Positions 31,901-56,799 of a stretch of 64,000 nt of DNA are shown here, piece by piece (within the stretch, counting starts at the first letter, position 1; each line of letters begins with the position of its first letter). The notes below the pieces were generated by a model. It worked only from the letters and a program-made list of their open reading frames with translations. It was not told the origin of the DNA and ran no database searches. Source of the DNA: Blastocladiella emersonii ATCC 22665 (taxonomy: Eukaryota > Fungi > Blastocladiomycota); NCBI GenBank assembly GCA_025594325.1, contig JANHCV010000006.1, positions 434,001 through 498,000 on the forward strand. Reading direction: 5' to 3'. The translations under genes were made by a program, and so were the position numbers.

Positions 31901-32100
31901 GCGGGGCGAGGAGGGACTCGCGGAGACGCGCGAGCGAGATCGCCATCATGTGGCGCGGGTGGCGGCCCGTGCTCGTGTCGACAGCGACCGCGGGTGGGCA
32001 GGATGTAGAGGAGGAGGGGAGGCTGGCGGGGTCGTGGGACGCGGCGGCGAGGAGTAGAGAAACCAAGGGCTCCGAGAGGGAAGAGGGGGAGGGGCCCTGA
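28974..32100 (+). CDS. Ser/Pro-rich protein with probable START-like domain and C-terminal TM helix
   Basis: ORFs 28974-30776 and 30724-32100 joined by a GTACGT...CACAG intron (about 30742-30796). Segment LRARVDLPGTPAEMLRVIVD...GWVLEPLP....TRVVLYVH resembles the START/Bet v1 fold; TM segment WVLGSVMFLATLMSVGWSAL. Confidence 0.5.
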
Positions 32101-33257
32101 GAGTTAATACAGAACGAGATGTGCAGTGTACCATCTACAAAAGCTCACGGTTGCATTGGTGGGATGAAGTCGGAGGCGTGAGGGGTGAAGCGGTCGGTGT
32201 CTCGCGCGCGAGACATCCACACGTGTTTTCGCGACGCGTCCGGTCGGCCGAGGCGCGCGGGCGCGACGATGGTCGTCATCTGGAACGCCTTCAGAACTTT
32301 CAAAGTACGCTTCTGTACCTGGGCCATAGTTTGCGAGGGAAGCGTTGTCAAGACCTTGATCCAGCCGATGGTGGTCGCACGCCAGCAACTCGTCGATCAG
32401 GCTCTTCTAATAGGTCTCTTGGCTTGCGATAGTTACCATCTAGCACACGAGCGTATTTAGGGCTGTGAATAGGGTATGAAGGCTATTCGCGTGATGTAAT
32501 AGTTGGCGTGTGACGCGTCCTCGCGCGGCCACGGAGCAGGCGCGCGGCGTGCTCGACTCACTTCGCACGCCCGCTCTCCCCGACGTGCTCCCCAACATGT
32601 ACTCAAATGGACTAGAATCGCTTCCAACTTGTCGCAACGTGTGCGCTGTTGAGCGGTAGACATCTTGCGCTCGTTTATTTGTGTGCGTTCTTCACGGACG
32701 CTTGGGTCTCGGAGCGACCTCGACGCTGACACGCCCTTGCCCGACAGATGACTTGCCCGGCTTAGGAAAAGGATTAGGGCAAAATCACGATGAGCCTGAG
32801 GTTTGCCTGGATCGACACCGTGTTCACACGTACTTAGTCCAGTCGGGAATCGCAGCCCACTCGCGTACGAAGCATTGGCAAGCGCGTGGGAGCCCATCAC
32901 CATTACTTGCTCTTACTCCAAGCATCTTCCGTGACCTGCGTGCTCTCAGCGACGCAAAAGTATGCCCATGCCAGCACCTGTCACTCTTCCGCGTAGCGCA
33001 CGCCAGTCTGGTCACACTCAGCAAGGCATTTTCGCTCGCACACCACGGTGGACGTGAAGTAGGAGGCTGAGAGCAGCACTTGCCCGTTTTCACTACCGCC
33101 AAAATCTTTGACTGCCCGCCCTTCAGCAGTGGCGCAGGCGCCCTTCTTCGTTCGACCTCATCGTCCGAATGCAAGTATACCCCAGGCCGTCGCCCAGCTC
33201 AAAAACACACCCGCTCCACCATTTCGAGTCCCACCGCTCCTCTCGCACCACGCTGGT

Positions 33258-33314
33258 CGGCCGCCCTCGCGCGGGCGCCGTGAAAAGTCCGCGCCGCCCG
33301 CGCGCGTGCGGCCC
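33258..33314 (+). repeat. 57-nt hairpin element, copy 1
   Basis: 20-nt arms (17 Watson-Crick pairs, 3 mismatches) around the loop CCGTGAAAAGTCCGCGC. Confidence 0.85.
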
Positions 33315-34507
33315 TCTGTACATTCATCAAGTCACAGCGTGGTACGCGAGGGCCGTGCGGATCTCGGGTGATGCGGCGGTGGGCGCGTCGTGCTTGACAC
33401 GACGGCGGCGTTGGACGCGACGGTCGGGGTCGCGCGGGCCGTGATGTCGGGTCTGTGTTGTTGAATTCGATGCTCCTTTGCTCCTCATAACGCGCTGCGC
33501 ATCATGGACGTGTGATAAAACGCAAGTTGTGGTCGCAATCGACGCCCGGACGACTGATCCGCGGGGCGGGCGCGTGAACTGACGCGAAAACGGGTTCACT
33601 AAAGGTCGCAGAGGCTGAGACCGCGGGCCATGCAATAGAGGCCCGGGTATGGCACAGCAGAGACTTGTTCCTGTCCTGACACGTACTTGGCCACACAACG
33701 TTTCCCGCCAACGAGTGCAGTTGCGTGCAAGGCGCTCGTCCGCGAACGCGTTTCGTGTGGCGCAACGCGGTCAGATGGGTCAGCTGATGGAGGCGCATTT
33801 TTGCCTTTTCGTCTCCGCCGCCTCGCAGAGCTCCTCGGTCTTTAGCCAAGCAAGATACCCTCATGAATATTGATGTAACTCTATGAAATAGCTATTGCGA
33901 CCAGCTAGGACCCCGCTCGTGCTTGATTTGCTCAGCCGCAGTCTATGCCCAGCGACGCTTCCCGCCCGTGGTCTCGGGAATCGAAGCGCTTTGTGCGGCA
34001 GCCGCGGTCGCGAGACGGGCGTCTGTCGACTCCTGAATAGAATAGCGCTGTACATGGTGTCGATCATGTTTACGACATGAGCTCCTTAACGGGCCCTGTT
34101 GAATCGCGGCAAGACGGGATTTCGTTGTCGCTCGTCACCTTCGTGGGGATGCTCACACAACAAGGCGTTCCCGAGATGCGACACGGGTGATCACTTCAAC
34201 TTACCGGAATCGCAAAACGCTACTTGCTTATCGCTGGCGTCGCTCACTGGGCGTGAACTCTTCACCCAATCTCGCACCGGTCAACGCGTGCGTCCTCACC
34301 TTCCTTTGATCGAGCGCTCCCCTCGAGACCCACTGATGTACCCGTCCCCTTACAGGCATACCCACGCGTCCGGGCGCACACTCACCGGCACACAAGAACA
34401 AGAGCACGACGCTCGCGCGGGCGATCAGGCCACCAGCCACGAACTCGGCACGATTCTCGACCTCGGCCGCCGTTCGAGTCTCGCACACCTCCTCACTCCG
34501 TGCTGTC

Positions 34508-34564
34508 GGGCCGCACTCGCGTGGGCGCCGTGAAAAGACCGCGCCGCCCGCGCGAGTGCGGCCC
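34508..34564 (+). repeat. 57-nt hairpin element, copy 2
   Basis: GGGCCGCACTCGCGTGGGCG / CCGTGAAAAGACCGCGC / CGCCCGCGCGAGTGCGGCCC: 19 Watson-Crick pairs plus 1 G-T. Confidence 0.9.
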
Positions 34565-35073
34565 TCCACACGTCACGATGCAGCGCGGGGCGAGGCGACC
34601 GTGCGGGACTCGATCGGCGGCGGGACGCGCGGCGGGCCGGTCGAGGTGGTCATGGGCACTGCATGGTCGCGGCGTGGTCGCGGTCCCGGTCGGATGTCGA
34701 TGGCGGCGCAGTGGAGGGTGTTCGGCCGTTGGAGTAGGAATGATTAGACACACGTTTGCTTCTCAGTATCCCGCGTCACATTCAGCCGGTGCCGAGCAGA
34801 AAGGGGTTCGGGCCGCTGAGCCACACGCGAGAACGTCAGAGGGCGCCCGGTCAGAATCAAGCGGTTCAACCTGAACACGCCGGGGATTCGCTCAATGGAT
34901 GGACGGGGCAGATGTGAGGAAGCAACCGCGCGCGCGGGGAGGTCGTATATTCTGACAGAACGAGAAGCTCGGCAGGAGGGACAATGACACGGCGCACGCC
35001 GCGCGCGAGGGCCGGCGACCCCATGATGTGCTTGTTACGGGGTCGAGCCGATCGGTCGACGAGCAGCAGGCGC

Positions 35074-35513
35074 TTAGTCGAAGAGACCGAAGCCCATGTC
35101 GTCGTCCTCCTCGGACTCGGGCTCGGGCTCAGCCTCAGCGGCGGCGGGGGCAGCCGAGCCAGCGGCGGGGGCGGCGGCGGCAGCGCCAGCGGGGGCAGCC
35201 GAGCCGGCGCCGATCTTGGACAGGAGACCGTTGACGTCGGTGTTGGCGAGGGCCTGGGCGAAGACCTTGGTCCAGATGGCCTCGACCTCGATGCCGGCGG
35301 CCTTGGTCACGGCCGAGAGGTTCTCGGGCTATGGGAGGGAGGGAGGGGTGATCGGTGAGGACGAGGTCGATCAGGGTGCGGGGTCGAGGGCGGCGAGGGT
35401 CGGATGGTGGCGAGGGTGACGGGGGACCACTGCGGCGGATGACGTACGGTGATGGCGACCTCGGCGTCAGCCAGGATGAGGGAAGCGTAGACGATGGCGA
35501 GCTCGGACGACAT
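35074..35513 (-). CDS. RPP1: 60S acidic ribosomal protein P1
   Basis: MSSELAIVYASLILAD / intron / ENLSAVTKAAGIEVEAIW..., Ala-rich hinge, C-terminal DDDMGFGLFD*. Confidence 0.96.
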
Positions 35514-36001
35514 GGTGACGAAGGGGAGAGAGGGAACAACACGGCTCGTTGAGTATGTTTAAACCGGGAGGTCACAACAACGAAGGCAGGGGCCAGAGCA
35601 GCGGGGAGTGGGGACCGCCCGCTGGCCTTGGCCCGGCCGCCGCCTGCCTGCCCGCACGCAGCGCGGCCGGCCGCCCAGCGGGCCCCGGCATAGCGCCGTG
35701 CGAGCGGGCCCTCGGAAGTGTGTACGCCGCCCACGTGCGCGTTGCTAGGCGCCCCGCTATTCGCGCCATCCGCATGGCATCAGGGTTGCCCGGTTTTCGC
35801 GCGTCACGCGCGCTCAGCTGATGCGGTCACCGTGGTTTCTTAGAGTTTTTCACCTCAACATCGTCCTGCTGTCGTGCCGTGCGACCGCGTGCGCTGCGCC
35901 GCCGCCTCCCTCGCCACCCTTGACCCGCTCCCGACTCGTCACGCCCGCCGCCGACGTCGCTGCTTCTTGCCCTCGGAACTCCACGCATCGCCCATCCAAC
36001 C

Positions 36002-36922
36002 ATGATCGCCGCCCGCCTGACCCGCGCTGTCGCCCCGCGCCTCGCCGCCGCCCACACCTTCTCGGCTGCCGCCATCCGCCTCGGTACGTCCCGCATCGGC
36101 TCTGCGGGAGAGTGCTGCCGGGCTCGCTCCTAGGGGGACATGGGGACTGTGCAATGGCCACACGAGCTCGATGCATCGACCGAGCAGCGAGGAGCACGTC
36201 GGACCACCTCGAGCATGAACTTTGCTTGTTTCTTGCACTATGTTGGCCATCGGTTATCGGCACCATGTGATCAACATCTTTGCGCACGACGGCATCTGCG
36301 CTATGGCGCTCGGCATGCGTGCACCGGCTCGATGCCGTCGCCGGCTGGCCGTCGTGTTACTCGAACCCGCTCACGGTATCCTGGACTGTTCAACTCGGCC
36401 TCGGCCGCGGTGATAACTGTCCTTGCTGATCGTGTCGCCGACGCCGCTCCACGCCTGCTCCTGCTCGTTGCCTTCCCGCCGTACCCGTGTCCCCCCCGAC
36501 GAGCGCGCAAACCCCAACTCAACCATCACCCACTCTAACCCATGACCCGATATCGTCAATCCATAGGCGGCCACGGCCCCGCTGAGCCCTTCGTCGGCCC
36601 CGGCACCCAGCCCGGCAAGATCCCCACCGACCTCGAGCAGTCGACCGGTCTCGAGCGCTTCGAGTACCTCTCGGAGCTCGAGGGCCGCAACGCCTTCGAC
36701 ATGAAGCCCCTCGAGCCCACCCACCTCGGCACCCCCGCCAACCCCATCGTCGTCGAGTCGGTCGAGAACGTCCGCTACGTCGGCTGCACCGGCTACCCCG
36801 TCGACTCGCACGACACCATCTGGATCCGCGTCAACAAGACCAAGGAGGAGGGCGTCAACCGGTGCCCCGAATGTGGTGGCAGTTACCAGCTGAAGATGGT
36901 GGATGCTCCCCACTTCCACTAA
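36002..36922 (+). CDS. COX4: Cytochrome c oxidase subunit Vb (yeast Cox4 type)
   Basis: Mitochondrial presequence exon, 483-nt intron (36084-36566), then PTDLEQSTGLERFEYL, VGCTGYP..SH, RCPECG zinc-site motifs. Confidence 0.93.
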
Positions 36923-37141
36923 GCAGGACCGGAACCCGACGGTCGCCGGCCGCCGTCCCGCGTGTCCCGACCCTCCCCGCCCCGTGTTTCTCCCCCTCTC
37001 TACAGCGCGTCTCGCACCTTCCCTACGCTCCTAATGTGCATGTCTCTCTCGTCCTTACCTACCCCACTGAATGAAATGAAGCTCGTTTGTTACTCGACGC
37101 CTCACCGACTTGATGCTGGCCACCGTGACCGAGCCCGGTCG

Positions 37142-37185
37142 CGACGCGTCAACCGGCGGCCAACGACGCGTCAACCGGCGGCCAA
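37142..37185. repeat. 22-bp direct tandem duplication
   Basis: CGACGCGTCAACCGGCGGCCAA occurs twice in tandem. Confidence 0.9.
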
Positions 37186-37874
37186 CGACTGTCGGGTTCC
37201 GGTCCTGCACAGCGGAAATGAGGCGCATCCACAATCAACGATGTCTCCGTCACGCTCCAACTGAACTCGACCCAGAGTCCCGACCCGAATCCGATCGGGT
37301 GCGGTCACCATGACTTCGCGACAACCCCACGCTGGCACCTCGACACGACGTGCCAGCTTGGCCGGACCACAAGGGCGTCTCGACCTTCGTTCCGACCATG
37401 ATTTTCGGGCTCATTGCGCTTCGCTATCACGCGAGCCTGTTTGGAACCGAGGATTGCTCTCACGCGGCGACGGCGATGCAGGCGCGATACACTCGAAAAC
37501 GACCATGTCGATACTGGAAGCACCCTGTAGTATACCCACTTGACTCTGAGAGCCGTCTGCGACGAGCAAGGCCCTGCAACGGCAGGGCAGCACGGTGGAC
37601 GCGTCGATTTATCACGTTCGCGTCACGTGGGCCGCGACGCGACCTTTCTTTGCGAGAGCCGCCGACCCTCGCATCAAACGACGAGTACAAGGAACCGGGT
37701 GATACTATATACATGATGTTGTCTCACGACCACTTACGGGTCGTCCACGCGCGAGGCCGCGCGACGCATCGCGACCACCGCGCTCGCCACCGTGATGTCC
37801 TGCTCGATCCACGCGCTGAACCTACACCGCGCTGTGAACTATTCGACTAGAGCTACAGCCCAGCCTCGCGTACC

Positions 37875-38453
37875 TCAATCCGCCGCACACCCTTCATCCG
37901 CCGGCGGCCGGATCGCATTGACGAGCGCCTCGACCTGCGTCGCGGCCGCCTGGATCTGGGCCTGGGTCGTCTCGATGGCCGCATTGAGCGCACTGACCTG
38001 CGCGTGCTGCGCCTGCATGCGGTGCGTGTTCTCCTCGGTCTCTCGCGCCACCTTGCCGACGGCCAGCATCAGCTGCATGAACTGGTCGCGGCTGATGGGC
38101 AGCTCGGACGCGAACCCCGTGGCTTTCGCGCATGCCCACTCCCACGTCGATGCCGGCCGGTCGCGGAGGTGGGTGATGAGGAGGATCGTGGCGGCCGTCG
38201 GCGCGGCGAGGAGAAGCAGGTAGAAGAGAAGGGTGAGCGCGAGGTACGCGGCGAGCAGGGCGGCCGGGAACGCGAGGACGGCGGCGAGGAGGCGCGTGGG
38301 GCGTGACGACGCGGCCGTCGGATCGTCGAGCTTCGTGAAGGCGTCGTACGGGTCGACAGGTGGAACTTGAGCGGGACCCGCGGCGGTGGCGCCCGTGGGC
38401 GGCGCGACAACGACCATCACCACGCTTCCCGACGGCACGGACTGGTTGGACAT
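37875..38453 (-). CDS. Small hypothetical membrane protein with hydrophobic hairpin and C-terminal coiled coil
   Basis: ATG with CCACC context at 38453; long hydrophobic stretch LLAAVLAFPAALLAAYLALTLLFYLLLLAAPTAATILLI; Q/A-rich heptads; host-like codon use. Confidence 0.6.
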   Translation of the reverse strand: MSNQSVPSGSVVMVVVAPPTGATAAGPAQVPPVDPYDAFTKLDDPTAASSRPTRLLAAVLAFPAALLAAYLALTLLFYLLLLAAPTAATILLITHLRDRPASTWEWACAKATGFASELPISRDQFMQLMLAVGKVARETEENTHRMQAQHAQVSALNAAIETTQAQIQAAATQVEALVNAIRPPADEGCAAD

Positions 38454-38659
38454 GGTGGCGGGATGCGGTTGCGGCAAGACTTGATGCGTATCAGCTTTAC
38501 ATGGGCGAGGGGGTCGACAATGTCGAGAGAAGCTGGAGCTGAGAGCTGAGCTGCGCCAAGTCCAAGCGACCGACGCGTTGGTCATAGCGTCGTCGCGGGC
38601 TCTGCGTCACTTCCACCAAGCATTTGCGAGTAGAGATAGTATATTTACGAGAGCTAATC

Positions 38660-40053
38660 TTATGCCGCGGCCGAGCCGTCGTCGAGGTACGCGAACGTGA
38701 GAACGGCAAAGACGAGGAACACGAGGCCGCCGACGTATGTGACGGTGCGCACCGAGATGCGCGTCGCGAGCATCTTGCCGCCGAGCACCGCGATGCCCGT
38801 GCACAGCGAGTGGCCGACCACGGTCCCGAGAATGACGCTGCCCACGTTCTACAGTCGGTTTGAGCGAGTGTGAGTCGCGTCGTCCTGCGCTCAAGGCAAG
38901 TGAGGAAACGTACACCGGCGGCCGCCATGGCGATCGTCGCGATCTGCGACCGGTCGCCCCACTCGGCGAGGAACGTGAGGATGAAGGTTTCGACGAAGAT
39001 GGGCGACAGAATGTACTCGGCGACGCGGGCGAGCGCGCGGCCCATGGTCGCGATCAGGCCCAGCGGCGCGCCGTCGGCGGGCTGGCCAGCAGTCCCACGT
39101 TCGACGCGCTCGTACTCGTGCTTGTCGCGGGCCTTGATCTCGGCCTGGACCTCGGCGAGCTCCTCGTCGGTCGACGCGTCAGCGGGCATAGCACGCGCCT
39201 CGCGGACCATGCGCACGCCGAACACGAGGAACAGCGCGCCGGCGAGCGCCTGGGTGTAGGTGCGCGACAGGAGCGCCGGGAGCACGTTGCCGAGCAGCGC
39301 CGACAGGACCGACATGACGGCGAGGGCCGACCACGCGGCCGCGAACACGAGCGCGCGAGGGTGCGTCATGGCCATGATGGCGGCGATCAGGAAGGTCTTG
39401 TCGCCGATCTCGGACACGATGATCATCACCGACGACGTGATGAGCGACCGCCGCTGCTCCTCGACCTCGACGTCGATCTGCGTCGGCGTCGTCGTCCGCG
39501 GGCCGCTCGTCGTCACGGGGATCGCCACGGGCAGCTCGTCGCTCGGCCGCTCGCGGTACGGCGTGTTGGGCACCGACTGCGGGCGCCGGTTCGGCGCCTT
39601 GCCCGCGGGACCCGCCGACGACACGGGGACGGGTGTCACGGGCACCGCCACGGGGATCTCGTACTCGACCGACGCGTCCTTGGCCTTAGCGCGGTCCTTG
39701 CCAACGTCGTCATCGGCCGCACCGTCCGCGTCCGAGTCCACGTCGGCATCTAGCACCGGCATCAGCTGTGGCTGCGCCTCGTCCGAGTCGTCGGTCGACG
39801 GGCCGCCGCCCTCGCTGTGGACGGCGGGCGGCGGGAGCGCCAGCGCGGCGCGGCGGAACAGACCCGTTCGCTACACGATGGGTGTCACTTTGATGGACGG
39901 TTTAAGCCAGTTTGGAGGGTGTAGTACCTCGTGCGTCGCAATAGCACCGGCCACGGCCACGGGGGAGGCTCCTGCCGATGCCACGGCGAGGGCAGCGAGG
40001 AGCGCGAGTACCGCCACCACGGCGCGACGAGTTGAGGATGTTGGTCGAGACAT
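38660..40053 (-). CDS. GDT1: GDT1/TMEM165 (UPF0016) Ca2+/Mn2+:H+ antiporter, multi-exon
   Basis: Two family motifs, SEIGDKT and AEWGDRSQ; N-terminal signal-like exon; two introns. Confidence 0.93.
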
Positions 40054-40542
40054 GTATGGTCGGGTTCTACACGCCGCGCGTCGTGTGCGTTGGTCTCGGG
40101 GGTGTGCGACTCAGCGGGTGGGTCGCCCACTTACGCGAGGAGAAGCTGAGCAATGGTCGGCGAGAGAGAGGGGAGATCTCGCGCTTAGTCGAGGGCGAGT
40201 GCAGCCAGTCGGTGATTGCGATACATGGAAGTTGTTCCTGGCGTCAATTCGACGAGAGAAGGGGCGCGGCGGCGCCAAGTCTGCGTCGGCGGCGAAGTGG
40301 GCGGCGAAGGCGAAGGCGTTCGTGGCTGCTGCCGGGTGGCTGCGAGGCACCACGTGTGCGTGTCTCGCACCGCGCGCGCGCGTCGCTCTGCCTGGTCGCG
40401 TTCGCCGTGCCCCGGTTTCGTTCGCGTCCCCGCCCACTCGCACGGCGACCAGGAAGATGACGAGTCCAAAGTGTTTAGATTCAAGAGATACACTGCTTGC
40501 TTGCTCCCGCGGCGGCGCCCACACCGTGTGTCCGAACGCGGC

Positions 40543-41460
40543 TCACTGGCGCAGCTCCTCGTACGGGTACTCGACGCTCTGCCCCTTGCGGCGCCACAGC
40601 TTGAGCTTGGTGTTGCGGACGACGTGGCGGACCCAGATGTGCTCGCAGTACTTTGCCTTGTGGGCGCGGATGAAGGACGGGTCCCACAGCTCGCTCGCGA
40701 TGCCAATGTCCTTGCAGCACCGCATCAGCGCGTTGGACTTGCACCCCTCCATGGCCGTCGCCAGCTGCTTCTCGTCAAACACCTCCTGCTCGCCGCGCGC
40801 CTGCGAGATGAACCGCCCGTACGCGTACAGCGCGTACTCGCGGCTGATGACGCGACCCGCCATGCTGTGCGGGCCGCGCGGCGCCAGCGCCCAGCCGCCA
40901 GGCTTGAAGGCGCGGTTCAGGATCCGACGGTACTTGATCTCGGGCAGGTACAGCAGACCGTCTACAAGTCGGGGAGGATGAGCGGCTGTGACGCGGCATT
41001 GGTCAAGAAACCGGACAGCGACGACGGACCCGGCTTGATCTCAATGTCGGCCGGGTCGACCTCGGCGAGCAGGATCTCGACCACCGCGTCGGGGAACGCC
41101 TGTGTCGCGATGCCGGCAAACGCGTCCGCCTCCATGTGGAACGTGGACGACTCGGACGCGACCAGCGGCGACACGGTCTGCGACGCGAGCGACGGCATCG
41201 ACTTGACCGTCGACGGCTCCGCCGTGTTGTTGCCGTTGGCTCCCGCGGGCGCCTTCATCGGGCTCTCGAGCGGCGGGCGCGCAAACCGCAGCACCGGAGT
41301 CGTCTAACGAGGCAACACGGCGGTGTCAGCGGGGGGCTGTGTGTGCGAGGGTGGCGATGGGATCCAAGCTTACCGTCAGGGCGCGACGAGCGACGGACAC
41401 TGACGCCGATGACGACAGCGCGCGGAAGGCGCGCGATTGCATGGAGCCGATGAGATTCAT
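40543..41460 (-). CDS. MGM101: Mitochondrial genome maintenance protein Mgm101 (Rad52-type)
   Basis: DIEIKP/DGLLYLPEIKYRRILNRAFKPGGWALAPRG, EGCKSNALMRCCKDIGIASELWDP.FIR; mitochondrial presequence exon. Confidence 0.95.
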
Positions 41461-44400
41461 GGTTGTTGCGTCGGTGGGCAGAAGAAGAGAGCTGGGACCC
41501 GCTGTGTTGATCGCGTTGAGACTCACTCCCTTGCACGCGGCTGCTGCCTCGGGGCCGGCTTCAGGGAACCTTTCTTTGACGAGGGCATCGCTCGCCTCCC
41601 ATCCGTGGCTCTCTCACATCGCGTGCAGCCCGGAAGGCCGTGGGCCTCGCGTGTCCCTGAGAGTGGACCGCGCTGGAGGGCAACGTAGCGCCCCTCACGG
41701 CGGCACGTCCGCCCTCGCACGATCGAGTTGCAACAGGCTCTTGCAGACTACTTGCTGCCAAGACGACTCAGGTGAGTGAGATAAGACGGACTGAGCAAGC
41801 GATGGACGAGACGATGAGGTGGACCCTGAGAGGTGCGTGGCAACGGACCACCTGCGGTCACGCCACGCAGCCGCGCTTCGCGATCGCTGCCGTCACTTAA
41901 ATTTCGTCCAACGTTGCGCCAGCGTCTGATCCATACCCGGCGCTGACGATACAAGTTGTTATCTGACACCTCTTCTTCGAGCACACATTAGGCCGTGTGC
42001 GTTGACGACAGATTGTTCCGAGCCGTGTAATCTCGGTCCCACTTCTGGACCATGTTTTGCTACTTTGGCCTTCTACCCTCTTCTTCTTCAACACCTACTC
42101 CTCTCTGCCGCGGATGACGAAAGCGGTTCCCTTAACGAGAGGCAAGTGGAGTGCGGCGTGCGTGCTCCCGCGCCGTTCAGCATGTGAGAACATCACCGAA
42201 TCCGCATGCTTGCTCTCCCGCTCAACGCCCTCAGACAGCTTGATGAAGCGAATGAATTACCTGCTGCAACATGCTCGGCAGCGCATTATGCGTCCATTTG
42301 ACACGATCGCATTCCGACGTCGGTGTCCTGCGTCCGGGTGGTCGCGGCTTAGGAGGCGGGCTCCGACGGCGCCCCTCTCGATCAGCTTTCGCGGAAAAGT
42401 TCAGCTTGCACATGCTCTCGCGATTGCTTCGCTTCTTGCGTCCGACTTGCGCTTGAGAAGCGTGAGCAGCGCGCACTCGTCCCGCACTTGGAGTGCTTGA
42501 GGCTGGGATGCAGTACATGTGGTCGCGCAGCTTGACTTGGTTGGGTCCACCGGTATACTTACGGCCTCGGCCTCGGCCACGGCCTCGTCCGCGCTCACCC
42601 CACCCTGCGTCAACACCACCGCGGGACTGGCGAGACCCAAGTCTCAGCGGGTCGTGGACGTCGTCTTCCCGTCTCGAATTGTGTGATCGTGATCGTGAGG
42701 CCGCCGTATCACTTCCGCTCCAAACATACTCGCACCAGTTTTGCTTCACAGGCAAGTGTCCCGTCGAGTGGGAGGCCCGACGCACGCGCGTGAGACACGC
42801 TGCGAGACGCGACGCAAAATAGCGTGACGCGCGCGTGCGCCTTGATCCGAAACACGACGCGAGCTGGGACCTCGAGCTCTCGCTGCCTTCAACTCTGCAT
42901 CTCATGTATCCACCGCATGTAAAACTACCAGCAATGTAACTCAGGGCTTGCCGCCGTGATGTGGGCTTTCAAGTCGAAGGCGTTCTTCAGCAGCCACCTC
43001 GCCTCGACCCGACAGGGCTCAGGGAACCTTAGCCACGTGGTCGCGTTCACATGCTCTTCCCCACCAGCACATAATTTGAACCTACCGCGTGCTTTATTGC
43101 TATCAGTTTATCAAAGAAGAGTTGTACGTCACACGTGGTCGTCGAGTAGCAGGCGGCTCGCTTGTGGTCCAGGTCGCCGTCAATGGCGAGGCGGCGCGCA
43201 CTAGCACGGCGCGACACGGTTCGAAAACTGCTCCGATCCTGCAGACCGTGTTGCCGTAAACACCGAGGTCGCCGGGCTCGCGGTCCAAGTCTTCTTCACC
43301 CACTTGTGTCGCGCCGGGCCCGCTTACCTGTGCGTGCCGCGGCTCAAGGACATGATCGCTACCTCGGCGGTGACCCACGGGACGTACTTCCCGCGTTCCC
43401 GGCTTACCTCGCGATCGCGTCGCCAAACTGTCCTGCATCATGACGGTCCCGACGTTGCATCACGCCCGCTTCGCTGTCAAGCGAGCGCGCTTTGTCGTTT
43501 CTGAACGTAGCCGCGCCGAGAGCGTTCTTGGTCTGTTCGTGGCGGCGACGCTGATGATGCGACGCTCTTGCTCCTCTCTTCGATTATTCTTTTGGAAGGG
43601 GCTCGTTGCACACTTACACGCGGTTCACGGGGGTCCTGCTGGGCCTGGTGCTGGCCGAGCTTGGGTCGCTCGCACGGACGTGCCTCGCTCACCTGCTCGA
43701 GCTCGAGTCCGACAACCGCAAAGAAGACATGCCGCTGATCCACCGTGCCGCGCGATACATTTAAGACGGTGCCACGTGGCAGTACTCGCGCGTGCTCGGC
43801 GTCCCGCGGGAGCTCTTTGCGGCCTGCTGTTCTGATCCCAGGACGGCGAAGCTTGCGCTCCTCTCACTCTTCGCCGCGCCTCGACTCACTCGCAGCCCCG
43901 GCGCGCGGCCCGTCCCGAAACTGTAAACACAACCAGCAAGTTTCCCGCGATCGCTGCGACCCAGAATCGCGTCGTCGACTGCGCCGTCACGGTGGCCCAC
44001 GCCCCGCTCGCACGCGCAGGACAAGATCAACGCAGGTCGCACTCGCGAGGCTCACTACTTTATGCAAGTTCACTCTCGTCAAGCTCGCGTCGACCGGCTA
44101 AAGGAGCTGTTCAACCCGGTCCGCGCGGTCCTGCTGCGACGAGGATGAAGCGCGTTGACAGTCCCTTCTCGCTCTGTTCCAGGCAGCTGTACGCGGACGC
44201 CGCCACGCTTGACCGATATTTGGTAATCGTAGAGAAAATTTTCTTTCTGCTGATTGGTGAACACCCTAGATTGATATTGCTGCTCGGTCGCGAGGCGGCT
44301 AATGACGCGTTGCGCCACTTCACACGTCGGAGTGCTTCTGCCCTTCGCTCAAGTGCTACGCCCGCCATCATTTCGTGCCCATCGGTTAGTTTAAACTGCC

Positions 44401-45843
44401 TCAATGGCGCGGAGAAGTGAAGAAATGACACACGTTCATGCTGACGTTGGCGATGACCGTGAGAACTTTGCTCGGGTCAGTGGCATTTGCTATCGGGGCC
44501 CGAGTGGAGCGGACAATACAGGGTTACCATGGGTGCGGGTCCGTGGATACTGAGGGAGTTTCGGGAGCTCAGTTCGAATCCTTCTCGTTCGAGGTTGAAT
44601 CTCAGATCAGCCATGAGTCAACCCTTAGCCGACCTTCTCTTCGAACCGTCCACTACCATCCACGCCCCATTCCCTAATCCTTTCCTTTTGCTTAATGATT
44701 GGATTTTTGATAAATAAATCGGCACAAAGATGCACAAAGGCAGGCCGCGGCACGCTCGTTTCGTGTTGGCCGCGGGAGACGCGACGCACGGGAGACAAGT
44801 CGCGATGAACTGCGACTCTATCAGGCGCGGCGGGCGAGAGAGATTTCACGATTCAGTCCAGGATGCTGGCAGCCAAAGAATTGTCTCCTCGCGTATTCCA
44901 CTCGCCTGGAATCAGGGGCCGTTAAAGCAACGTGATCATGAACGCGATCATGATAACGCGGGAGACGCACGTGCCACTGATCAGGTCGCACGAGGATTTC
45001 AGTCCTTGGCTCTGTCCTGGCAAAGACTCAGGAGCGTTTTGTCGTACAAAATAGCTGTGGTATCGGGGATGACGCGCCGGTAACTAAATGACCGGCGATC
45101 ATGGTGCGAGTGAGACAAGGTGCGAGACACGACGCGAAAACGCGTGACGCGTTCATGCGCCTTGATCTGAAATGCGACGCGCGGTGCCGCTCCCGCTTTC
45201 GCCCACTCCGTCGCCCGTCTTCGCACGCTCTCTCATCGTCAGCGTCGCACCTCATGTATTAATCGCTAGTTACTAGCCGCAACGTAGCATGTTACCGACC
45301 GTCGTGAGCTTGTTCGCTTGAGGAGCCCTCGTCCGCCGGAAGTTGCTTGTCATGATCGGCCTCGAGTCTATCCTCGCCGTCGGCCTACTCGAGTCGTCTG
45401 CTGTTTCTTATGCTAGATTTTGAGATGCATTTCCTCTGGTCCACTCGTTTGCTCGCTCGCGATTGATCGCGCGACTTGGGCGTGCTCCAATTCAAATAAT
45501 GTCGTGTAGCTGTTTGGGGATTGCTCGCCCGCTTCGTCGCCATGTCCGTGCGTGGGGTCGAGATTCACATATAGCCTGTCCGTTCCCTCTTGATGGTATC
45601 TCGTAAGCCATTCAGTCGCACAAGGCCGCTACGCACGCGTGAAGCGCCCTCGTTCAAAACCACCTCTTCCGTCGAGTCAATCAACCTTGCGACCAAAATC
45701 AAAGGCGTCGGTTGACATGGCGGCGGAGCACCAGAAGCCTCAGGTCGGGATAGCGAGCCCCCTTGCTGTCATGTCGGCCTTGCTCAATAACGATTCGCGA
45801 AAGTACAATAAACTAGGATCTTACATTAAAACGAGCACGAGCA

Positions 45844-46482
45844 CTACACCTTGGCGAGCACACGGCGGTCGAGGACGGCGTAGCGCAGGATGAAGACGAG
45901 GATGCCGCCGACCAACATGGTGAGGCCGGCGAAGGCGATCGCGGGCGCAAACTGCGCGCTCGGCAGGGCGCCACCCTTGGACGCGCTGATCAGCGCCGTG
46001 GCCACGGGCGTGCCGAGCGCGTACCCCAGAATGTTGCTCGTCGAGATGAGGCCCATGGTCGAGGCCAGCGTGGCGACACCAAACAGCTGCGCGACGCAGC
46101 TCGGCGTGATGCTGAGGTAGCCGCCGCTCATGAACCCGTACAGGCCCGCGAACACGACAAGCCACGCCTGCGAGTCGCCGCCAAACAGCCACGTGGTGAG
46201 GATCGACACGCCCGACCCGACGAGCGAGAGCCCGAGGGATGTGACGTTGCCCAGTCGGTCCGCGAGGTAGCCCATGGACACGCGGCCGACGATCGAGGTC
46301 GCGTTGAAGACGGTGAGCAGCGCGCTGCCAAGCGCGGCCGAGTGCGGCGTGGCCTGCGCGACGTAGGTCGGGAGCAGGAACGGCGGGACGAGGAACCCGA
46401 ACGTGTTGAAGGCGAGGCCAAAGTAGAGGAGCAGGAACCGAGGCTCGCGGAACAGCGCGAGGTTGAGTTTCGGCATCGAATG

Positions 46483-46516
<34 letters not shown>

Positions 46517-47283
46517 GGTTGCTGCGCACCGGCGGGGGTTCTGGTCACTTTCGTGGTCACACTACTAGTGATGCGAGGCCGAGCGAGCACGGCGCCAAGC
46601 GCGAACAGCACAAAGTTGATGGCCGCGAGGACCCGCAGCGTCCACGCGAAGCCGATTGACGGCATGATGGCCTGGATCATGTTGACGTAGATGAGGCCGC
46701 CAACGCCCGACCCAGCGACCGCGATCCCCACGGCCGTCGAGCGGCGCTCAACCCACCACTGCGCAATGAGCGCGAGCCCCGTGTTGATGCCGAGCGAGCC
46801 GGCCGCGCCGTACAGCAGGCCCTGCGTCAACATCAGGTGCCACACCTCGGTCGCGAAGCTCGCGAGGACGAGCGACGCACCCGCGATCACGGCGCCGAGG
46901 GCCAGCGCGTTGCGGAACCCCCACGACTCGGCGAGGCGGCCCGTGAAGGGTCCCGCGGCGGCGAGCGCCATGGGCATGAAGGCGCCGATCAGCGAGATGG
47001 ACGAGAGCGAGGCCGAGGGGAAGTCGACCGTCTTGTACTGCGCGGTGAAGAGGCCAAAACTGTTGAGGTTTGAGAAGACGGCAAAGTAGGTGAGGAAGCT
47101 CACGGCAACCTGGCACCACGCCGCGAAGCCGCCGTCGAGGCGGTCGGCCGTCAATGCTGCTGCGTCGTTGATGTTGTTGCCGGCTTCGAGAGATGATGAG
47201 GGGGCGTCGAGATCTAGGACCGAGTCGGGTTTTCTGGGTGGTTCAGCGGCGGCGGCGGCGGCGGCGTTGTAAGTCACGGTCAT
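45844..47283 (-). CDS. MFS transporter, monocarboxylate (MCT/Mch-like) family, copy 1
   Basis: About 12 hydrophobic segments; DGGFAAWCQV..SF, GRLAESWG, QGLLYG, QWWVERRSTAVGIAVAGSGVGG, GRVSMGYLADRLG; poly-Q central loop; intronless. Confidence 0.92.
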
Positions 47284-48202
47284 GGTCCTTGATGGTGATG
47301 ATGATGATGATGATGATGATGCAGGGTGTTGCGGGCGGGGCGGGGGAGAGCGAGCATCAGAGCAAGGAACAGCCGCGGGTTTTGTTCATTCCAGCAAGCG
47401 GGCGCGCCATCCACATGTGTTTGCTGCTCAGCGGCCAGGCGTCAAAGTGTTGCATGGAGTGTGCGTGTTGTAGGAAGAGCAAACGAGCGTCAGCGCGGAG
47501 CGTAGAGGTCGGATACGCGGGGCCAACTCGGCGGATCCCTGTCGCGGCCCGTGTAGCCGCTGCGCCACCCTGTGTTCGCTCGCGTTGAATCTCCCGCGCG
47601 GGCAGCAAAGAGCCGCAGGTGGGGCAACCGATGCAGCGAGATCCGTCGGCTTCTCGTGTGCGTGGGGCGTGGCAGTCGGTGCGCAAACAACAGGGCGGGT
47701 CCGGGTCGGTGATGCGCCGCTGATCCGCGCCGCTCGCTCGCGAGCAGGCCGAATCCCTGCAGCAGGATCACGTGCGAGGTGGCGCAGCCGCGCGAGACGC
47801 GAGACGTCCCTGCGTCCGTCCGGGTGCGGGACGCACCAGTTGGCCGCATCACCGCACCACAAGGCCCACGGAAACGTGCGCCAGAGCTCGCGGCCCACCG
47901 CGTGGGAACAGCGTTGCCCCACGCGACCCAAGCGTGTGCTTGGGCAACGCGACGCGGTGCGCCCGAGTCGCGCCGTGTCCCCCGTTCCACAGCCGAGTGA
48001 AGCGGACCGCAGAGGCGATGCAGCGGCCCGCTGCCGAATCCACTGGGCGACAGCGGTACGGGCGGAAGCGGCGCACCGCGCGCCGGTGCGGTCCGTCGCG
48101 CGAGCAGCAGCGGGGGAGCGGCGTGCGGTCAAGGCCCGGGTGATCCGAAACGCGCTAATTTTGGCGACGCGTCGCTCACGTCGCCGTGCCGTTCGCCGCC
48201 GG

Positions 48203-48208
48203 TATAAA
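48203..48208 (+). promoter_or_regulatory. TATA box of the QS-repeat gene (mirror copy at 53885-53890 on the minus strand)
   Basis: TATAAA in otherwise GC-rich DNA, 118 nt upstream of the ATG at 48321, followed by a C/A-rich leader. Confidence 0.6.
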
Positions 48209-48320
48209 GACTCGCACGCCCCCGCCGTCCTCTCAAGTTTGCTCGACACCAGCAATCGCAACGAAGCACATCGCATCGCACACCTGCTCAACCACCACCA
48301 ACCAACCAACCACCTTCAAG

Positions 48321-49040
48321 ATGACCCACTGCGCCCCGATCCACGTCCCCGCCGTCCAGACCCAGTCGCAGTCGCAGTCGCAGGCCCAGTGGGGCGGCAA
48401 CGGCGCCCAGTCGCAGTCGCAGTCGCAGTCGCAGGCCCAGTGGGGCGGCAACGGCGCCCAGTCGCAATCGCAGTCGCAGTCGCAGTCGCAGTGGGGCAAC
48501 CACGGCGATGCCGCGCAGCAGCAGTCGCAGTCGCAGTTCCAGTGGTCGGGCAACGGCCACCACTCGGTCGACCAGGCCCAGTCGCAGTCGCAGTGGAGCA
48601 ACGGCCACGGTGACGCCGCCCAGTCGCAGTCGCAGTCGCAGTTCCAGGGCAACTGGGGCAACCACGGCGACGCCGCGCAGCAGCAGTCGCAGTCGCAGTT
48701 CCAGGGCAACTGGGGCAACCACCACTCGGTTGACCAGGCCCAGTCGCAGTCGCAGACCCAGTGGGGCACCGGCCACGGCGCTCAGTCCCAGTCGCAGTCC
48801 CAGTCGCAGTCGCAGTGGTCCAACGGCCACGGCGACGCCTTCCAGTCGCAGTCGCAGTCGCAGTCGCAGTTCCAGGGCCACCACTCGGCCGACGGCTTTG
48901 TCGGCGGCAACCCGGCCACCTGGGGTCCCTCGGGCGACTGCGGCAACGGCGGCGACTTCCACATTCTCCCGATCAACAACCACGGCGACTGCGGCAGCGA
49001 CGTCGTGACCATCCTGCCCATCAACCACGGCTGCTGCTAA
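48321..49040 (+). CDS. 239-aa Gln/Ser alternating-repeat protein, copy 1 (function unknown)
   Basis: ATG in TTCAAGATG context downstream of a TATA box; ten (QS)n-W/G strand-plus-Gly/Asn/His turn units; Cys-containing C-terminus ending GCC*. Confidence 0.8.
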   Translation: MTHCAPIHVPAVQTQSQSQSQAQWGGNGAQSQSQSQSQAQWGGNGAQSQSQSQSQSQWGNHGDAAQQQSQSQFQWSGNGHHSVDQAQSQSQWSNGHGDAAQSQSQSQFQGNWGNHGDAAQQQSQSQFQGNWGNHHSVDQAQSQSQTQWGTGHGAQSQSQSQSQSQWSNGHGDAFQSQSQSQSQFQGHHSADGFVGGNPATWGPSGDCGNGGDFHILPINNHGDCGSDVVTILPINHGCC

Positions 49041-50318
49041 GCGAGCGGACGCCTACACTAGATGTTTGTCAATATCCCCTACTCCATCATCCTTATGTAA
49101 ATGTTTTCTTGCTCAAACAACCTTGCTTCTCGTGCAATCGGCACTTGCTCGTACATGGAGAGGAGTAGCCGCGAGTGAACGAGCTGGACAGGATCGAGCC
49201 TGGACCATTGTTTCATTGCCTCCGCTTCTCGCTTCCTTGTCGTTTGTTAATCGATCGATGCCTCTGATGCTTGAAATTGAACATGAATCGATGGGCGTGC
49301 CGCTTCTTCCTGAGAGTGCGACAGATTCGCAGCGCCAAGAACCAAGCTGTGGCGCTACGCGGTCAGCTGAGCTTCGACGACCGCGATGCGCCACGACTCT
49401 GCGTCGAACGCTCATGAGGTGTTGAGCTTGTCAAATAGACGCGCAAGCACTGTTTTTCCAGCTTGCGCGTCGCGAGAGCAGCGTACGACTTGCTCGCTCC
49501 AGATCGTCGTGTGGCAGGTCGCCGTGTGGCAGGGAGAGCTGTGCTGCTTCACGAGTTTGTTTGTTTGCGGGGCTTTCAGGTACCGACGTTAACCCAAACT
49601 ACGTCGGAACACGGATTCGCGCGGGCAGCGACACGTCGTACAGCGCCGCATGATCCTCGGCGTGATGTGGCGCCGCACACTCGAACGATGATCACCAACG
49701 CGACCGTCGCTGGCCGTCTTCAACATCCTTGCCCTCACTAAACAGCCGCTTGGATCACGTCACTCGCCATGTAGCTTGCTGCTCACTTGCTGAACTATGT
49801 CGCTGCACCTGATACGATCAGTCGCCCAGCAGCCGATGCCCAACCGCATGCAGCGCTGCTCTTCACGGCTCCGAGCTCGAGACCTGCAAGACTCCCTGGT
49901 CTATGTCGGCGGCTGGCAAGAACGCAAGTGTGGGCTATTGGTGCACCCGTAGATTTGCGGATGCTCGCTGCACGGACCCACATTAGTGCTCGTCGCTTGC
50001 GAGTATTGGTTGGCAAAGGGCACTGCCTCCGGTGGGGGTACCACTATGGCGGGGTCACATTCGACAGTGTCGCCCCAGACTTTAGCCCAGGAGAATTAAT
50101 GCAACAAATCACCCAGAAAATCAACTCGCTGCATCTTCGCGCAAAGTGATATCAAGGCGATCAAGTAGGTCTTCGATGATGTTCGAGTTGCTTCACCCGC
50201 GGTTGCACCAGTCAACAGCGGGTGGAATACCTGTCCTAAGCTACAGTCTTTCGACCCGGTCCCGCACGCCAACTCGTCGTTACACGCAATTTCTCGACCG
50301 TTCCGCATCGCGCTGTTT

Positions 50319-50375
50319 GGGCCGCACCCGCGCGAGCGCCGTGAAAAGGCCGCGCCGCCCGCGCGGGTGTGGCCC
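50319..50375 (+). repeat. 57-nt hairpin element, copy 3 (in palindrome spacer)
   Basis: 18 Watson-Crick pairs, 1 G-T, 1 mismatch; loop CCGTGAAAAGGCCGCGC. Confidence 0.9.
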
Positions 50376-51525
50376 TCAAGTACCTTACACGTCGCAGCGC
50401 AGTGCGAAGCGGTTGATCGAGGATTAAGTTCGAAACGCAGGCCCGGATCAAGGTCGCGCGACGTGTCGAACGCTGGTCGTTGCAAGAGGGCTGTCTGGAA
50501 TACATGAAGCGTTGTAATCCCAGATGTGGTTTGAAGCGAAGCAGTGGAGAGCTTGAGTCGCGATTGACAACGCTGCGCACCGTCCAGGATCTGCTCGCGC
50601 ATCGCGTGAGACGCAGGAGTGGACGAGGTGTTGGCCGATTGTGATCGCAGCTCCGTCACGGCCGCCGGCTTACGATTCGCCGGACATGTGTCGCATTCTT
50701 GTGCAGCCAACGCGCTACAACTCATGCTATAGGCCGAATTGGCTATCGTGGGTCTCGCTGGTTGACTGTCACTGCAGTCCGTGACGTGCTCGCGGCGAGG
50801 TGACAGCGCGAGCAACGCGTTTCTCATCTCGGCGTGCCGACCAGCGGCGTGGCCAGCCGCTTGTCGCAGAGCAGTCTCGCCCTCGCCCTCGCTCCCGCAT
50901 CCTCGCATATCCTACACTTCCATGAAGCGACACTTGATGCAACCTAGCGATTAGGCTCAGAAGAAGACTACCTTGCGACGCAAACCGGGCTGCGAGCGAA
51001 ACGGTGCTGTTGGAACGCATCACGCGGCAAACCTGAGCTTATGCTCGCGCTTGTGCGAGCCTGTGCAACCGTGCATCGCTTATGGCGAGAACGCCTCGTC
51101 CCCCGGCGCCGAGCGGCGCTGAGTTCGTCAAGGCGGCGGTTACCGCACCACGGGTTTGTCGTTATTGTCGCACTCCGTGAGTGTAGTTGAACATTTGCGG
51201 ACCAGTCACCCTAACCCACGCGCTCAATTTATCACTCGGCGAGCTAGAGAAAGTTCTTTCGGACAATTATTCAGACTTGAACGGCGGCCAACTACTCACC
51301 ATTCGGGCCTGGTCCAAGCGTGTGGCCTCTCGGGTTGTCTCGCGCCATGATCGGGGGCTGCTCCAAATACCAACCGGACATGGCTACTCGAAAGCTGGCT
51401 GCGAATTCACTTGGATTCACTAGCTTTCCCGCGACGAGTTTCACGCGCTGCGCCACAGGCCGTTGCTCATGTCCACCACGATTGGTGTTGTTTGAATCTC
51501 GCCGCTGTCCCTCATCGCGCTGCAA

Positions 51526-51582
51526 GGGCCACGTCCGCGCGAGCGCCGTGAAAAGAGCGCGTCGCCCGCGCGGGTGTGGTCC
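51526..51582 (+). repeat. 57-nt hairpin element, copy 4 (in palindrome spacer)
   Basis: 16 Watson-Crick pairs, 3 G-T, 1 mismatch; loop CCGTGAAAAGAGCGCGT. Confidence 0.85.
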
Positions 51583-53052
51583 TCAATACTTCTACGTTTG
51601 CGGCGCGGAGTGGGACAGCCGCGTGGGACTCGGACGCACTCGTCGCTGGCCATGGCCACGGCGACAGCAAGCGAGCGAGTGCTGATTGATTGCCGCGAAT
51701 CTGGCCACCACGTATGAGTGCATTGCCCATTTGCGTCCTCAATTCCACAGCAAGTAACTTCCAACCGTGGTCGTAGCTTACACGACCGCGACCATCATCG
51801 CGATCGCATCAGGTTTCCGCGCAGGATGCGCTTCTCGTGAAGTCGCGCTGCGGCCACATATCATTCGTTGGATCACGCACGCGCACAAGCTCACGAGCGG
51901 TCCAGTTGAGCAAAAGCTAGTAGCTATACATAACAAAACTCTCGCTGATCTTATATCAAAGTCTCTGCCGACGCATGTGCCGCCGGCTCACCCTGCTGCT
52001 GCTGCCCCTGTCCTTGCACCCCTCCCGCGGCCGACAGCCAGCCCAAACGCGGGCAATCCGAGCATCGCGTCGAGCCCCGCGAACGGCCGCTGCTGCGCGT
52101 CCTGCTGCTGCTGGAAGTACGCCGCGTTCGGCGGCGCGACCATGGCTGCGGCGGCCGCGGCGGCCGTGACGGCCGGGTGCAGGAGATTCGCCCACCCTTA
52201 TGCCGCAGGTAGATAGTCAGAATCGCCGTGATGCACTCACTGTTCGAGAGTGGCCACGTACAGCTCCTGTGGCGGGCCCTCGTCGCGTAGCCGCCGCGAC
52301 GGCAGGAACGGCCGGTACAGCTCGAGGACCGTCGAGTGGTACATGATGTTGAGGTATGCGACCTGCCCTGCAGCGGCGTTGAGAGGCGGTAGCGCGGGTG
52401 ATCATCGTTCGAGTGTGCGGCGCCACATCACGCCGAGGATCATGCGGCGCTGTACGACGTGTCGCTGCCCGCGCGAATCCGTGTTCCGACGTAGTTTGGG
52501 TTAACGTCGGTACCTGAAAGCCCCGCAAACAAACAAACTCGTGAAGCAGCACAGCTCTCCCTGCCACACGGCGACCTGCCACACGACGATCTGGAGCGAG
52601 CAAGTCGTACGCTGCTCTCGCGACGCGCAAGCTGGAAAAACAGTGCTTGCGCGTCTATTTGACAAGCTCAACACCTCATGAGCGTTCGACGCAGAGTCGT
52701 GGCGCATCGCGGTCGTCGAAGCTCAGCTGACCGCGTAGCGCCACAGCTTGGTTCTTGGCGCTGCGAATCTGTCGCACTCTCAGGAAGAAGCGGCACGCCC
52801 ATCGATTCATGTTCAATTTCAAGCATCAGAGGCATCGATCGATTAACAAACGACAAGGAAGCGAGAAGCGGAGGCAATGAAACAATGGTCCAGGCTCGAT
52901 CCTGTCCAGCTCGTTCACTCGCGGCTACTCCTCTCCATGTACGAGCAAGTGCCGATTGCACGAGAAGCAAGGTTGTTTGAGCAAGAAAACATTTACATAA
53001 GGATGATGGAGTAGGGGATATTGACAAACATCTAGTGTAGGCGTCCGCTCGC

Positions 53053-55576: not shown

Positions 55577-55610
<34 letters not shown>

Positions 55611-56249: not shown

Positions 56250-56799
56250 TGCTCGTGCTCGTTTTAATGTAAGATCCTAGTTTATTGTACTTTCGCGAAT
56301 CGTTATTGAGCAAGGCCGACATGACAGCAAGGGGGCTCGCTATCCCGACCTGAGGCTTCTGGTGCTCCGCCGCCATGTCAACCGACGCCTTTGATTTTGG
56401 TCGCAAGGTTGATTGACTCGACGGAAGAGGTGGTTTTGAACGAGGGCGCTTCACGCGTGCGTAGCGGCCTTGTGCGACTGAATGGCTTACGAGATACCAT
56501 CAAGAGGGAACGGACAGGCTATATGTGAATCTCGACCCCACGCACGGACATGGCGACGAAGCGGGCGAGCAATCCCCAAACAGCTACACGACATTATTTG
56601 AATTGGAGCACGCCCAAGTCGCGCGATCAATCGCGAGCGAGCAAACGAGTGGACCAGAGGAAATGCATCTCAAAATCTAGCATAAGAAACAGCAGACGAC
56701 TCGAGTAGGCCGACGGCGAGGATAGACTCGAGGCCGATCATGACAAGCAACTTCCGGCGGACGAGGGCTCCTCAAGCGAACAAGCTCACGACGGTCGGT

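Follow-up and report, generated by a model that had tools for sequence, protein, structure and literature searches.

A dispersed family of covarying hairpin modules in the genome of a fungus, Blastocladiella emersonii

Background

Repetitive extragenic palindromes (REP) and bacterial interspersed mosaic elements (BIME) are short, multi-copy hairpins that lie outside genes, often at gene 3' ends between convergent genes and sometimes in arrays, and whose stem pairing is kept; the former are mobilised by RAYT transposases. We describe here a hairpin family with comparable properties in a eukaryote, Blastocladiella emersonii ATCC 22665 (Fungi, Blastocladiomycota). Four of its copies lie in the stretch of 64,000 nucleotides that was analysed, hereafter the window (assembly GCA_025594325.1, contig JANHCV010000006.1, positions 434,001 to 498,000 of the forward strand). 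Dozens of copies across the genome, each evolving separately, have retained the pairing and the loop while the DNA around them decayed.

Three other systems offer points of comparison. In Helitron2 transposons, no more than about 20-30 bp separate the 3' hairpin from a sharp 3' terminus, insertion occurs after TTTT, a 5' terminal inverted repeat is matched by a repeat directly upstream of the 3' hairpin, and an autonomous partner with a Rep-helicase has the same ends; compensatory changes have been reported for these hairpins (PMC3627910). The defining features of the Helitron2/Helentron group were taken from that paper (Bao and Jurka 2013) and from the Fusarium FoHeli study (PMC5148889). In Fanzor/TnpB systems, units of about 1.2-1.5 kb finish with a structured omega-RNA, directly 3' of the TnpB/Fanzor open reading frame. 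Finally, fungal hairpin small-RNA (microRNA-like) loci are intergenic stem-loops of 60-200 nt, characterised by discrete small RNAs mapping to the arms of the stem; a re-analysis of such loci has been published (PMC9757828).

Results and discussion

A hairpin family of at least 85 copies

The window belongs to the contig numbered C18 here (434001-498000), one of 21 contigs in an assembly of 32.65 Mb. It has about 65% GC and contains eukaryotic genes, for example Vps54, GDT1 and MFS genes. An earlier note, made from the letters of the window, had placed hairpins at 33258, 34508, 50319 and 51526, all on the + strand. These coordinates were borne out, and each hairpin has the announced 57 nt, with 20-nt arms and a 17-nt loop starting with CCGTGAAAAG. 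Direct reading also confirmed the two variable stem positions that had been singled out: at pair 10, copy 2 has T-A whereas copies 3 and 4 have C-G, and at pair 6, copies 1 and 2 share G-C, copy 3 has G-T and copy 4 has A-T. Three stem pairs of copy 1 (1, 8 and 10) are mismatched, which went unmentioned. The 13-mer GCGCCGTGAAAAG, with at most one mismatch, occurs four times in the window, compared to 0.22 expected, and none of 100 shuffles reached this number. Relative to dinucleotide shuffles, the folds of the four hairpins have z values of -4.65 to -6.6 on the + strand, and of -2.6 to -4.65 on the - strand.

The hairpins proved to be members of a larger family. A 30-nt pattern with up to 3 mismatches found 58 sites genome-wide, compared to none for the reversed control, and a 23-nt core with up to 2 mismatches found about 75 sites, to which BLAST added a few. 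A profile search of the 309 kb of loci that were fetched then gave 85 non-redundant copies on 15 contigs, a lower bound since the count is taken from these 309 kb. The caveat that only four copies exist is therefore superseded. Homology between loci is limited to about 100-200 nt around the hairpin.

No match to the window was found in Rfam (release 15) at the gathering threshold, and matches at E values up to 10 were generic hairpin matches to microRNA models (33 bits, for a threshold of 90). A literature search for the loop string returned primer matches only. A metagenome scan with the loop pattern gave 15 matches, all to the loop and none with a stem; for want of stems they were taken as chance matches and rejected as family members.

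Stem pairing is maintained by compensatory changes

Covariation was measured on 69 distinct copies aligned with a covariance model, R1, which has 119 positions and 31 pairs; the alignment is fitted to this model and the copies are related, the hairpin part being ungapped. Among the pairing cells of this alignment, 91.8% are paired, compared to 81.4% in shuffles, and 26 of the 31 pairs have changed on both sides. Compensated cells number 201, compared to 61 in shuffles and to 36-57 when the partner was slid along the sequence. For none of the five covariation measures did any of 500 shuffles reach the observed value. Almost every copy has a stem of its own, with 66 different stem haplotypes among the 69. 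Of the 22 pairs of a copy, on average 1.8 are compensated, 1.35 have a wobble change and 1.4 are broken, for a site divergence of 14.7%. At such a divergence, drift without compensation would break about one-quarter of the pairs.

The outer helix that encloses the hairpin (described below) behaves in the same way: 85.9% of its cells pair with their own partner, compared to 71.9% with the partners of other copies (p 3e-11). At two paralogous loci with common flanks, L002 and L003, a double change from C-G to U-A in this helix could be seen by eye. When the upstream strand was paired instead with the downstream strand of the preceding module, neighbours proved too similar for the two partners to be told apart.

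If the hairpin were a mere DNA palindrome under symmetric mutation, G·U and A·C cells should be equally numerous. With the fixed U·G of the apical stem excluded, 167 G·U and 60 A·C cells were counted, a 2.8-fold excess (p 7e-13), which argues that one particular strand folds. The RNA of the + strand is more stable than that of the - strand in 25 of 28 copies, and R1 scores at the same sites are 50-120 bits forward and 20-49 bits in reverse. The folding strand is the + strand as given, as either RNA or single-stranded DNA.

The proposal of an undescribed structured element is thus supported by a covariation signal that is stronger with 69 copies, by a loop that is the best-conserved part of the sequence, and by the lack of an Rfam match. 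Outcomes that would have spoken against it, namely no covariation, a loop no better conserved than its flanks, or a match to an Rfam family or to a described transposon end, were looked for and none was encountered.

The hairpin is the core of a longer module

The 57-nt hairpins are the cores of modules of about 120-190 nt, with 75-80% GC. Consensus folding of 28 copies with RNAalifold gave an outer helix, CaCCGCGCUG / CAGCGCGGuG, which encloses the hairpin; at the tip, a 7-nt loop, AAAAGNC, sits on an apical stem of 4 bp. From the outside inward, a module thus comprises one or more outer helices, a 3'-side bulge, the 20-bp stem, a C·Y mismatch, the apical stem and the loop. The bulge is an unpaired stretch of 20-25 nt that starts with UCUGUAC and sits between the 20-bp stem and the outer helix. 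In 67 of 69 copies, the apical stem has the U·G. There is also a plausible third helix, UCGAGUCUCGCC / GGCGGGACUCGA, which would be the outermost; it is weaker, with 59% pairing in an alignment made from sequence only. In module 2, outer pairing read by eye extends from about 34473 to 34613, with TCGAGTCTCGCAC / GTGCGGGACTCGA as the outermost pair.

Information content is highest in the hairpin and fades in both directions, to about -76 and +80 nt, with no sharp edge; conserved sequence continues for at least 70-130 nt beyond the hairpin. Minimum-energy folds had suggested rods of 250 nt or more. This was rejected, as copies with swapped flanks pair equally well beyond 60 nt from the apex (33 compared to 30.5 pairs, p 0.31). 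With profiles of the two half-modules, the 309 kb yielded 45 matches adjacent to a hairpin and no orphan for one half, and 38 matches and one weak orphan for the other. We conclude that the module is an integral unit, whose halves are not found apart from the hairpin in these 309 kb.

The weak flanking similarity that had been noticed around the four window copies is real, and the upstream TTCGAGTC and downstream CAGCGYGG...GGGACTCG are the two strands of the outer helices. The upstream string had been called B-box-like, and a short interspersed nuclear element (SINE) transcribed by RNA polymerase III had been envisaged. This reading finds no support: ARAGORN finds nothing, there is no tRNA-like part, no conserved A-box region, no T4 run that could serve as a terminator and no tail, and the partial B-box-like string is a helix strand.

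Modules close non-coding units between convergent genes

The modules are found in same-strand arrays of one to four, with a spacing of 0.16-2.0 kb (mode about 1.2 kb), and these arrays are mostly located in gaps between convergent host genes. Genuine coding frames were picked by GC content at third codon positions (GC3). Of the downstream neighbours at up to 700 nt, 18 are on the opposite strand and 2 on the strand of the module; of the upstream neighbours at up to 1.5 kb, 20 share the module's strand and 5 do not. The hairpin is situated 70-500 nt from the stop codon of the opposite gene, and 0.7-1.3 kb beyond that of the same-strand gene. Each module closes a non-coding unit of about 1.2 kb, of which the body represents about 1 kb. 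The features of the window are collected in Table 1. Modules 1 and 2 are flanked by a START-like gene (30724-32097, +) and, on the - strand, by a gene for a ribosomal P protein, whose stop codon is about 470 nt past module 2, as fits the convergent context of the whole family.

Table 1. Coordinates of the modules, unit bodies and associated features in the window
Feature	Position	Strand	Evidence or remark
Unit 1 body, between the stop of the 30724-32097 gene and module 1	32101..33239	+	No open reading frame with coding-type GC3
Module 1: 57-nt hairpin 33258-33314 and outer helix	33240..33360	+	Covariance model R1 102.9 bits, E 1e-21; fold z -4.70
Unit 2 body, non-coding	33361..34489	+	
Module 2: 57-nt hairpin 34508-34564 and outer helix	34490..34606	+	R1 106 bits; fold -79 kcal/mol, z -6.60
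Last exon of convergent neighbour, acidic ribosomal protein P type, C-terminus ...DDDMGFGLFD	35077..35328	-	Translation, GC3 test
Unit 3 body, non-coding, downstream of the (QS)n gene 48159-49037	49041..50299	+	Almost identical to paralogue at C18 787 kb
Module 3: hairpin 50319-50375 and outer helix, within the 2670-nt palindrome spacer	50300..50420	+	R1 110 bits; fold z -4.65
Unit 4 body, non-coding	50421..51506	+	
AATACA, the sole in-position motif of the window	50499..50504	+	Positional scans; strict motif missing at the other three window copies
Module 4: hairpin 51526-51582 and outer helix, within the same palindrome spacer as module 3	51507..51626	+	R1 104.6 bits; fold z -5.12

The possibility that the bodies are coding was rejected: they show no GC3 signal, no strand bias in the length of open reading frames, and no protein similarity between loci beyond the known duplications. 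They have a GC content of 0.60 and are skewed on the strand of the module, with C over G (p 2e-8) and T over A (p 1.5e-6). No motif or alignable sequence common to the bodies of different loci was found. The neighbouring genes are unrelated housekeeping genes (methionine synthase, TOR, ABC1 kinase, AP-mu, COX6A and an aminotransferase, among others), and a shared neighbour gene family was therefore rejected as an explanation.

In the fetched loci, 66 gene 3' ends were considered. Marks of mRNA 3' ends (UGUA, U-runs) are concentrated within about 100 nt after the stop codon, and AATAAA is essentially absent. This suggests that 3' untranslated regions are very short in this genome, and would place the units outside the mRNAs of their neighbours.

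A short motif, (A/T)ATA(G/C)A, often in the form TGGAATAGA, is found 100-160 nt past the apex (about 130 nt) in about 25 of 54 copies. It is almost absent elsewhere in the units, and the presence of AATAGA and AATACA in this position bin has a p value of about 1e-9. A role as promoter of the next unit was considered and rejected: hairpin-less copies of the motif about 1 kb upstream of first hairpins numbered 7, compared to about 4 expected, which is not significant.

Some individual loci deserve mention. The only opposite-strand pair is at L045 (C18:201997, -, and C18:203567, +), where two modules face outward from one body of 1.47 kb. Among 20 neighbours tested, the sole one of transposon type is a Ty1/copia-type reverse transcriptase fragment (RVT_2) beside one module, at L036:3-1106 (C5:1190802-1191905). 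Elsewhere in the window, the open reading frame 16886-18598 gave nothing in Protein Atlas.

Arrays and duplications

Several arrays have adjacent units whose bodies match in collinear blocks, with 68-78% identity, and whose modules are 82-86% identical. The collinearity indicates that the arrays are owed at least in part to tandem duplication of complete units. Judged by these identities, modules have changed more slowly than bodies since duplication. The units multiplied at least partly by tandem and segmental duplication.

The window itself contains a large palindrome, with arms at 42758-49711 and 52382-59335 (6954 nt, 100% complementary) and a spacer of 2670 nt. Modules 3 and 4 occupy this spacer, and the palindrome junctions are not at the hairpins. 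Units 3 and 4 are also present at C18 787 kb, where the (QS)n gene beside them is single; they are therefore older than the palindrome. Near-identity to C18 786-789 kb covers the end of the left arm and the spacer as far as about 51290, the segment 51300-52200 is about 10% divergent, and homology ends near 52200. The (QS)n/(QSQS) repeat protein gene, which has internal repeats of 51 and 57 nt, is doubled by the palindrome (48159-49037, +, and 53056-53934, -).

Module-bearing duplications of 99-100% identity are also found on other contigs. One is inverted, with its copies 36 kb apart (C11:2706459, +, and C11:2742473, -), and another is direct, at a distance of 160 kb (C5:544035 and C5:703679). 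A further inverted duplication, 79 kb apart and 99.2% identical (C11:2543628, +, and C11:2624357, -), contains a host gene too.

Comparison with described systems

The family resembles the bacterial palindromes in the properties listed above, and differs from them in that it is found in a eukaryote, its module is 3-5 times longer and has a conserved loop, and no Y1/RAYT gene was found. A search for the Y1 (IS200/IS605-type) transposase domain, PF01797, gave no match in the genome at E values up to 0.1, while the same search was positive in 6 of 14 control genomes.

A structured RNA at the 3' end of units of this size is reminiscent of the omega-RNA of Fanzor/TnpB systems, and PF07282 matches do exist in the genome. 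The unit bodies, however, have no coding signal and no mutual protein similarity, and the nearest of 40 PF07282 matches is 4.7 kb from a hairpin, which is not the position of an omega-RNA. About 33 loci with the TnpB/Fanzor-type zinc ribbon are over the cut-off, most of them in open frames of 400-1100 aa (for example C19:123972-124181, C15:1330122-1330319 and C6:44497-44688). This suggests a large Fanzor complement in this fungus.

As for fungal microRNA-like loci, the likeness lies in the intergenic stem-loops and in the presence of Argonaute genes; four intact Piwi-domain loci were found (C17:1404132, C17:1586553, C11:2504843 and C20:476549), two of them with identical scores. The difference is that in our family the loop is the most conserved part, and the members number at least 85.

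Possible function and alternative explanations

Our preferred explanation, to which we assign a probability of about 0.4 and which is therefore tentative, is that the module is a lineage-specific structured RNA element under selection, probably a processing or 3'-end signal of putative non-coding transcripts. The element most likely acts as a folded single strand, RNA made from the + strand. Constraint in situ, as seen in the identities of modules and bodies within arrays, was counted in favour of a selected element. The conserved loop and its U·G suggest a sequence-specific reader, and a candidate protein would recognise these two features. The fixed place at the end of oriented units, just ahead of the opposing gene's 3' end, suggests a signal for processing or termination, by which the putative transcripts would stop just short of that 3' end. 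As a variant, the module could be a small-RNA precursor, given the Argonaute genes. A bolder version, which we hold to be doubtful, would see in the family a new class of host-maintained RNA: a 'punctuation' hairpin with a loop-specific protein reader, ending about 60 putative non-coding units between convergent genes of a zoosporic fungus, and representing an RNA-level eukaryotic counterpart of bacterial REP.

Several observations weigh against the RNA signal. The cells counted for covariation are not phylogenetically independent, though the signal is very large. The bias in G·T over A·C would also fit a hairpin in one DNA strand, and Helitron-type elements, which use covarying hairpins too, are plentiful in this genome. 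No promoter motif was detected for the units, and (A/T)ATA(G/C)A had to be rejected as a general poly(A) or post-stop signal of the genome, as it is not general after stop codons. In the youngest comparable pair, module 4 and its paralogue, 4 of 57 positions differ, compared to about 10% in the flanks, so that the module is hardly slower. The loci of the family are on at least 13 contigs, and duplication alone is insufficient to explain the spread of copies to unrelated places among them. For the small-RNA variant, the RNase III domain gave one weak match only in the genome (C1:2959876).

Under the main alternative, which we consider unlikely, the module would be a cis-acting signal in single-stranded DNA, namely the terminal or subterminal hairpin of a rolling-circle transposon family of Helitron2 type, the 1.2-kb units being non-autonomous, cargo-carrying copies placed head to tail. 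The family has in common with Helitron2/Helentron a GC-rich hairpin that is kept by compensatory changes, an inverted repeat just upstream, clusters in the same orientation and unrelated interiors. The strand-specific bias is compatible with a hairpin on the transferred DNA strand, and the 79-kb inverted duplication on C11 starts sharply, 42 nt before a hairpin. Helitron Rep genes are present as well. Matches to the Helitron_like_N (Rep) domain were found at C2:728386-729036 and at 11 other places, one in an open frame of 1481 aa (C2 about 728 kb) and several with stop codons; some pair at equal score on opposite strands, for example C2:633863 (+) and C2:638807 (-). In the genome-wide Rep and pattern searches, however, no Rep match was within 10 kb of any hairpin match. 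Nor is the upstream repeat matched by a distant 5' repeat: in every copy its complement is local, following the same hairpin at a distance of about 22 nt, and repeat and complement covary. Were the arrays chains of Helitron2-type elements, an orphan 5' end should precede each first hairpin, yet no separate 5'-end copy was seen upstream of first hairpins in the 309 kb. The sharp 3' terminus at 20-30 nt is replaced by a gradual fade, the 57-nt hairpin being more than 70 nt from any possible end, and no T4 run was found at a consistent place. Finally, the collinear homology of bodies is typical of tandem duplication, and 66 distinct compensated stems are unlike the product of a burst followed by neutral decay. 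The broader suggestion, made in the earlier note, of a cis-acting site of a mobile element is thus neither demonstrated nor dismissed: no HUH/Rep, Fanzor or Y1 gene is near any copy, and no termini, target-site duplications or empty sites were found. Taken as a whole, the interpretation given in that note is partly supported.

Two further explanations were considered. The module could be a dead foldback or a repeat resembling a miniature inverted-repeat transposable element (MITE), or a plain DNA palindrome, in which the complementarity of the arms is kept by inter-arm repair or by gene conversion among copies, with no host function. Many large perfect palindromes in the genome suggest active homogenisation from arm to arm, the high GC content of the module could make it a favoured target of biased gene conversion, and at more than about 60 nt from the apex the flank-swapped controls pair no worse, so that pairing there is not specific to the locus. 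This explanation is nevertheless improbable, and a MITE or foldback was rejected as a class: conservation peaks at the centre and decays outward, the reverse of what a MITE shows, and neither definable ends nor target-site duplications were found. Moreover, the most invariant features are an unpaired loop and a non-Watson-Crick U·G, which inter-arm repair cannot explain, and the excess of G·U over A·C is unexpected under symmetric repair. A double-strand site that serves replication, recombination or insulation between convergent genes, and that is either bound as DNA or extruded to form a cruciform, appears to us very improbable. It would be consistent with the position in 3'-3' intergenic gaps, with an A/T-rich hexamer at a fixed distance within a GC-rich genome, and with the concentration of copies in certain chromosome regions. 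A sequence-specific duplex site would, however, forbid a stem that is free to vary in sequence while its pairing is kept; strand asymmetry is unexpected for it, and about eight contigs were without copies in the pattern searches, which argues against a general chromosome function.

Conclusions

Dispersed families with so much covariation are rare outside known RNAs and transposon ends, and this one comes from a little-studied fungal phylum. Whether the module is an RNA element or a transposon signal, the R1 model could be used to annotate about 100 loci of this genome that are at present unannotated. Should the module be a transposon signal, it would add to the known variety of rolling-circle termini. 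If the fold acts as RNA, it would provide a testable motif, in which loop and U·G are fixed and the stem sequence is free, that may lead to a new RNA-binding protein or processing pathway, and it would bear on the way in which a compact genome handles transcription between convergent genes.

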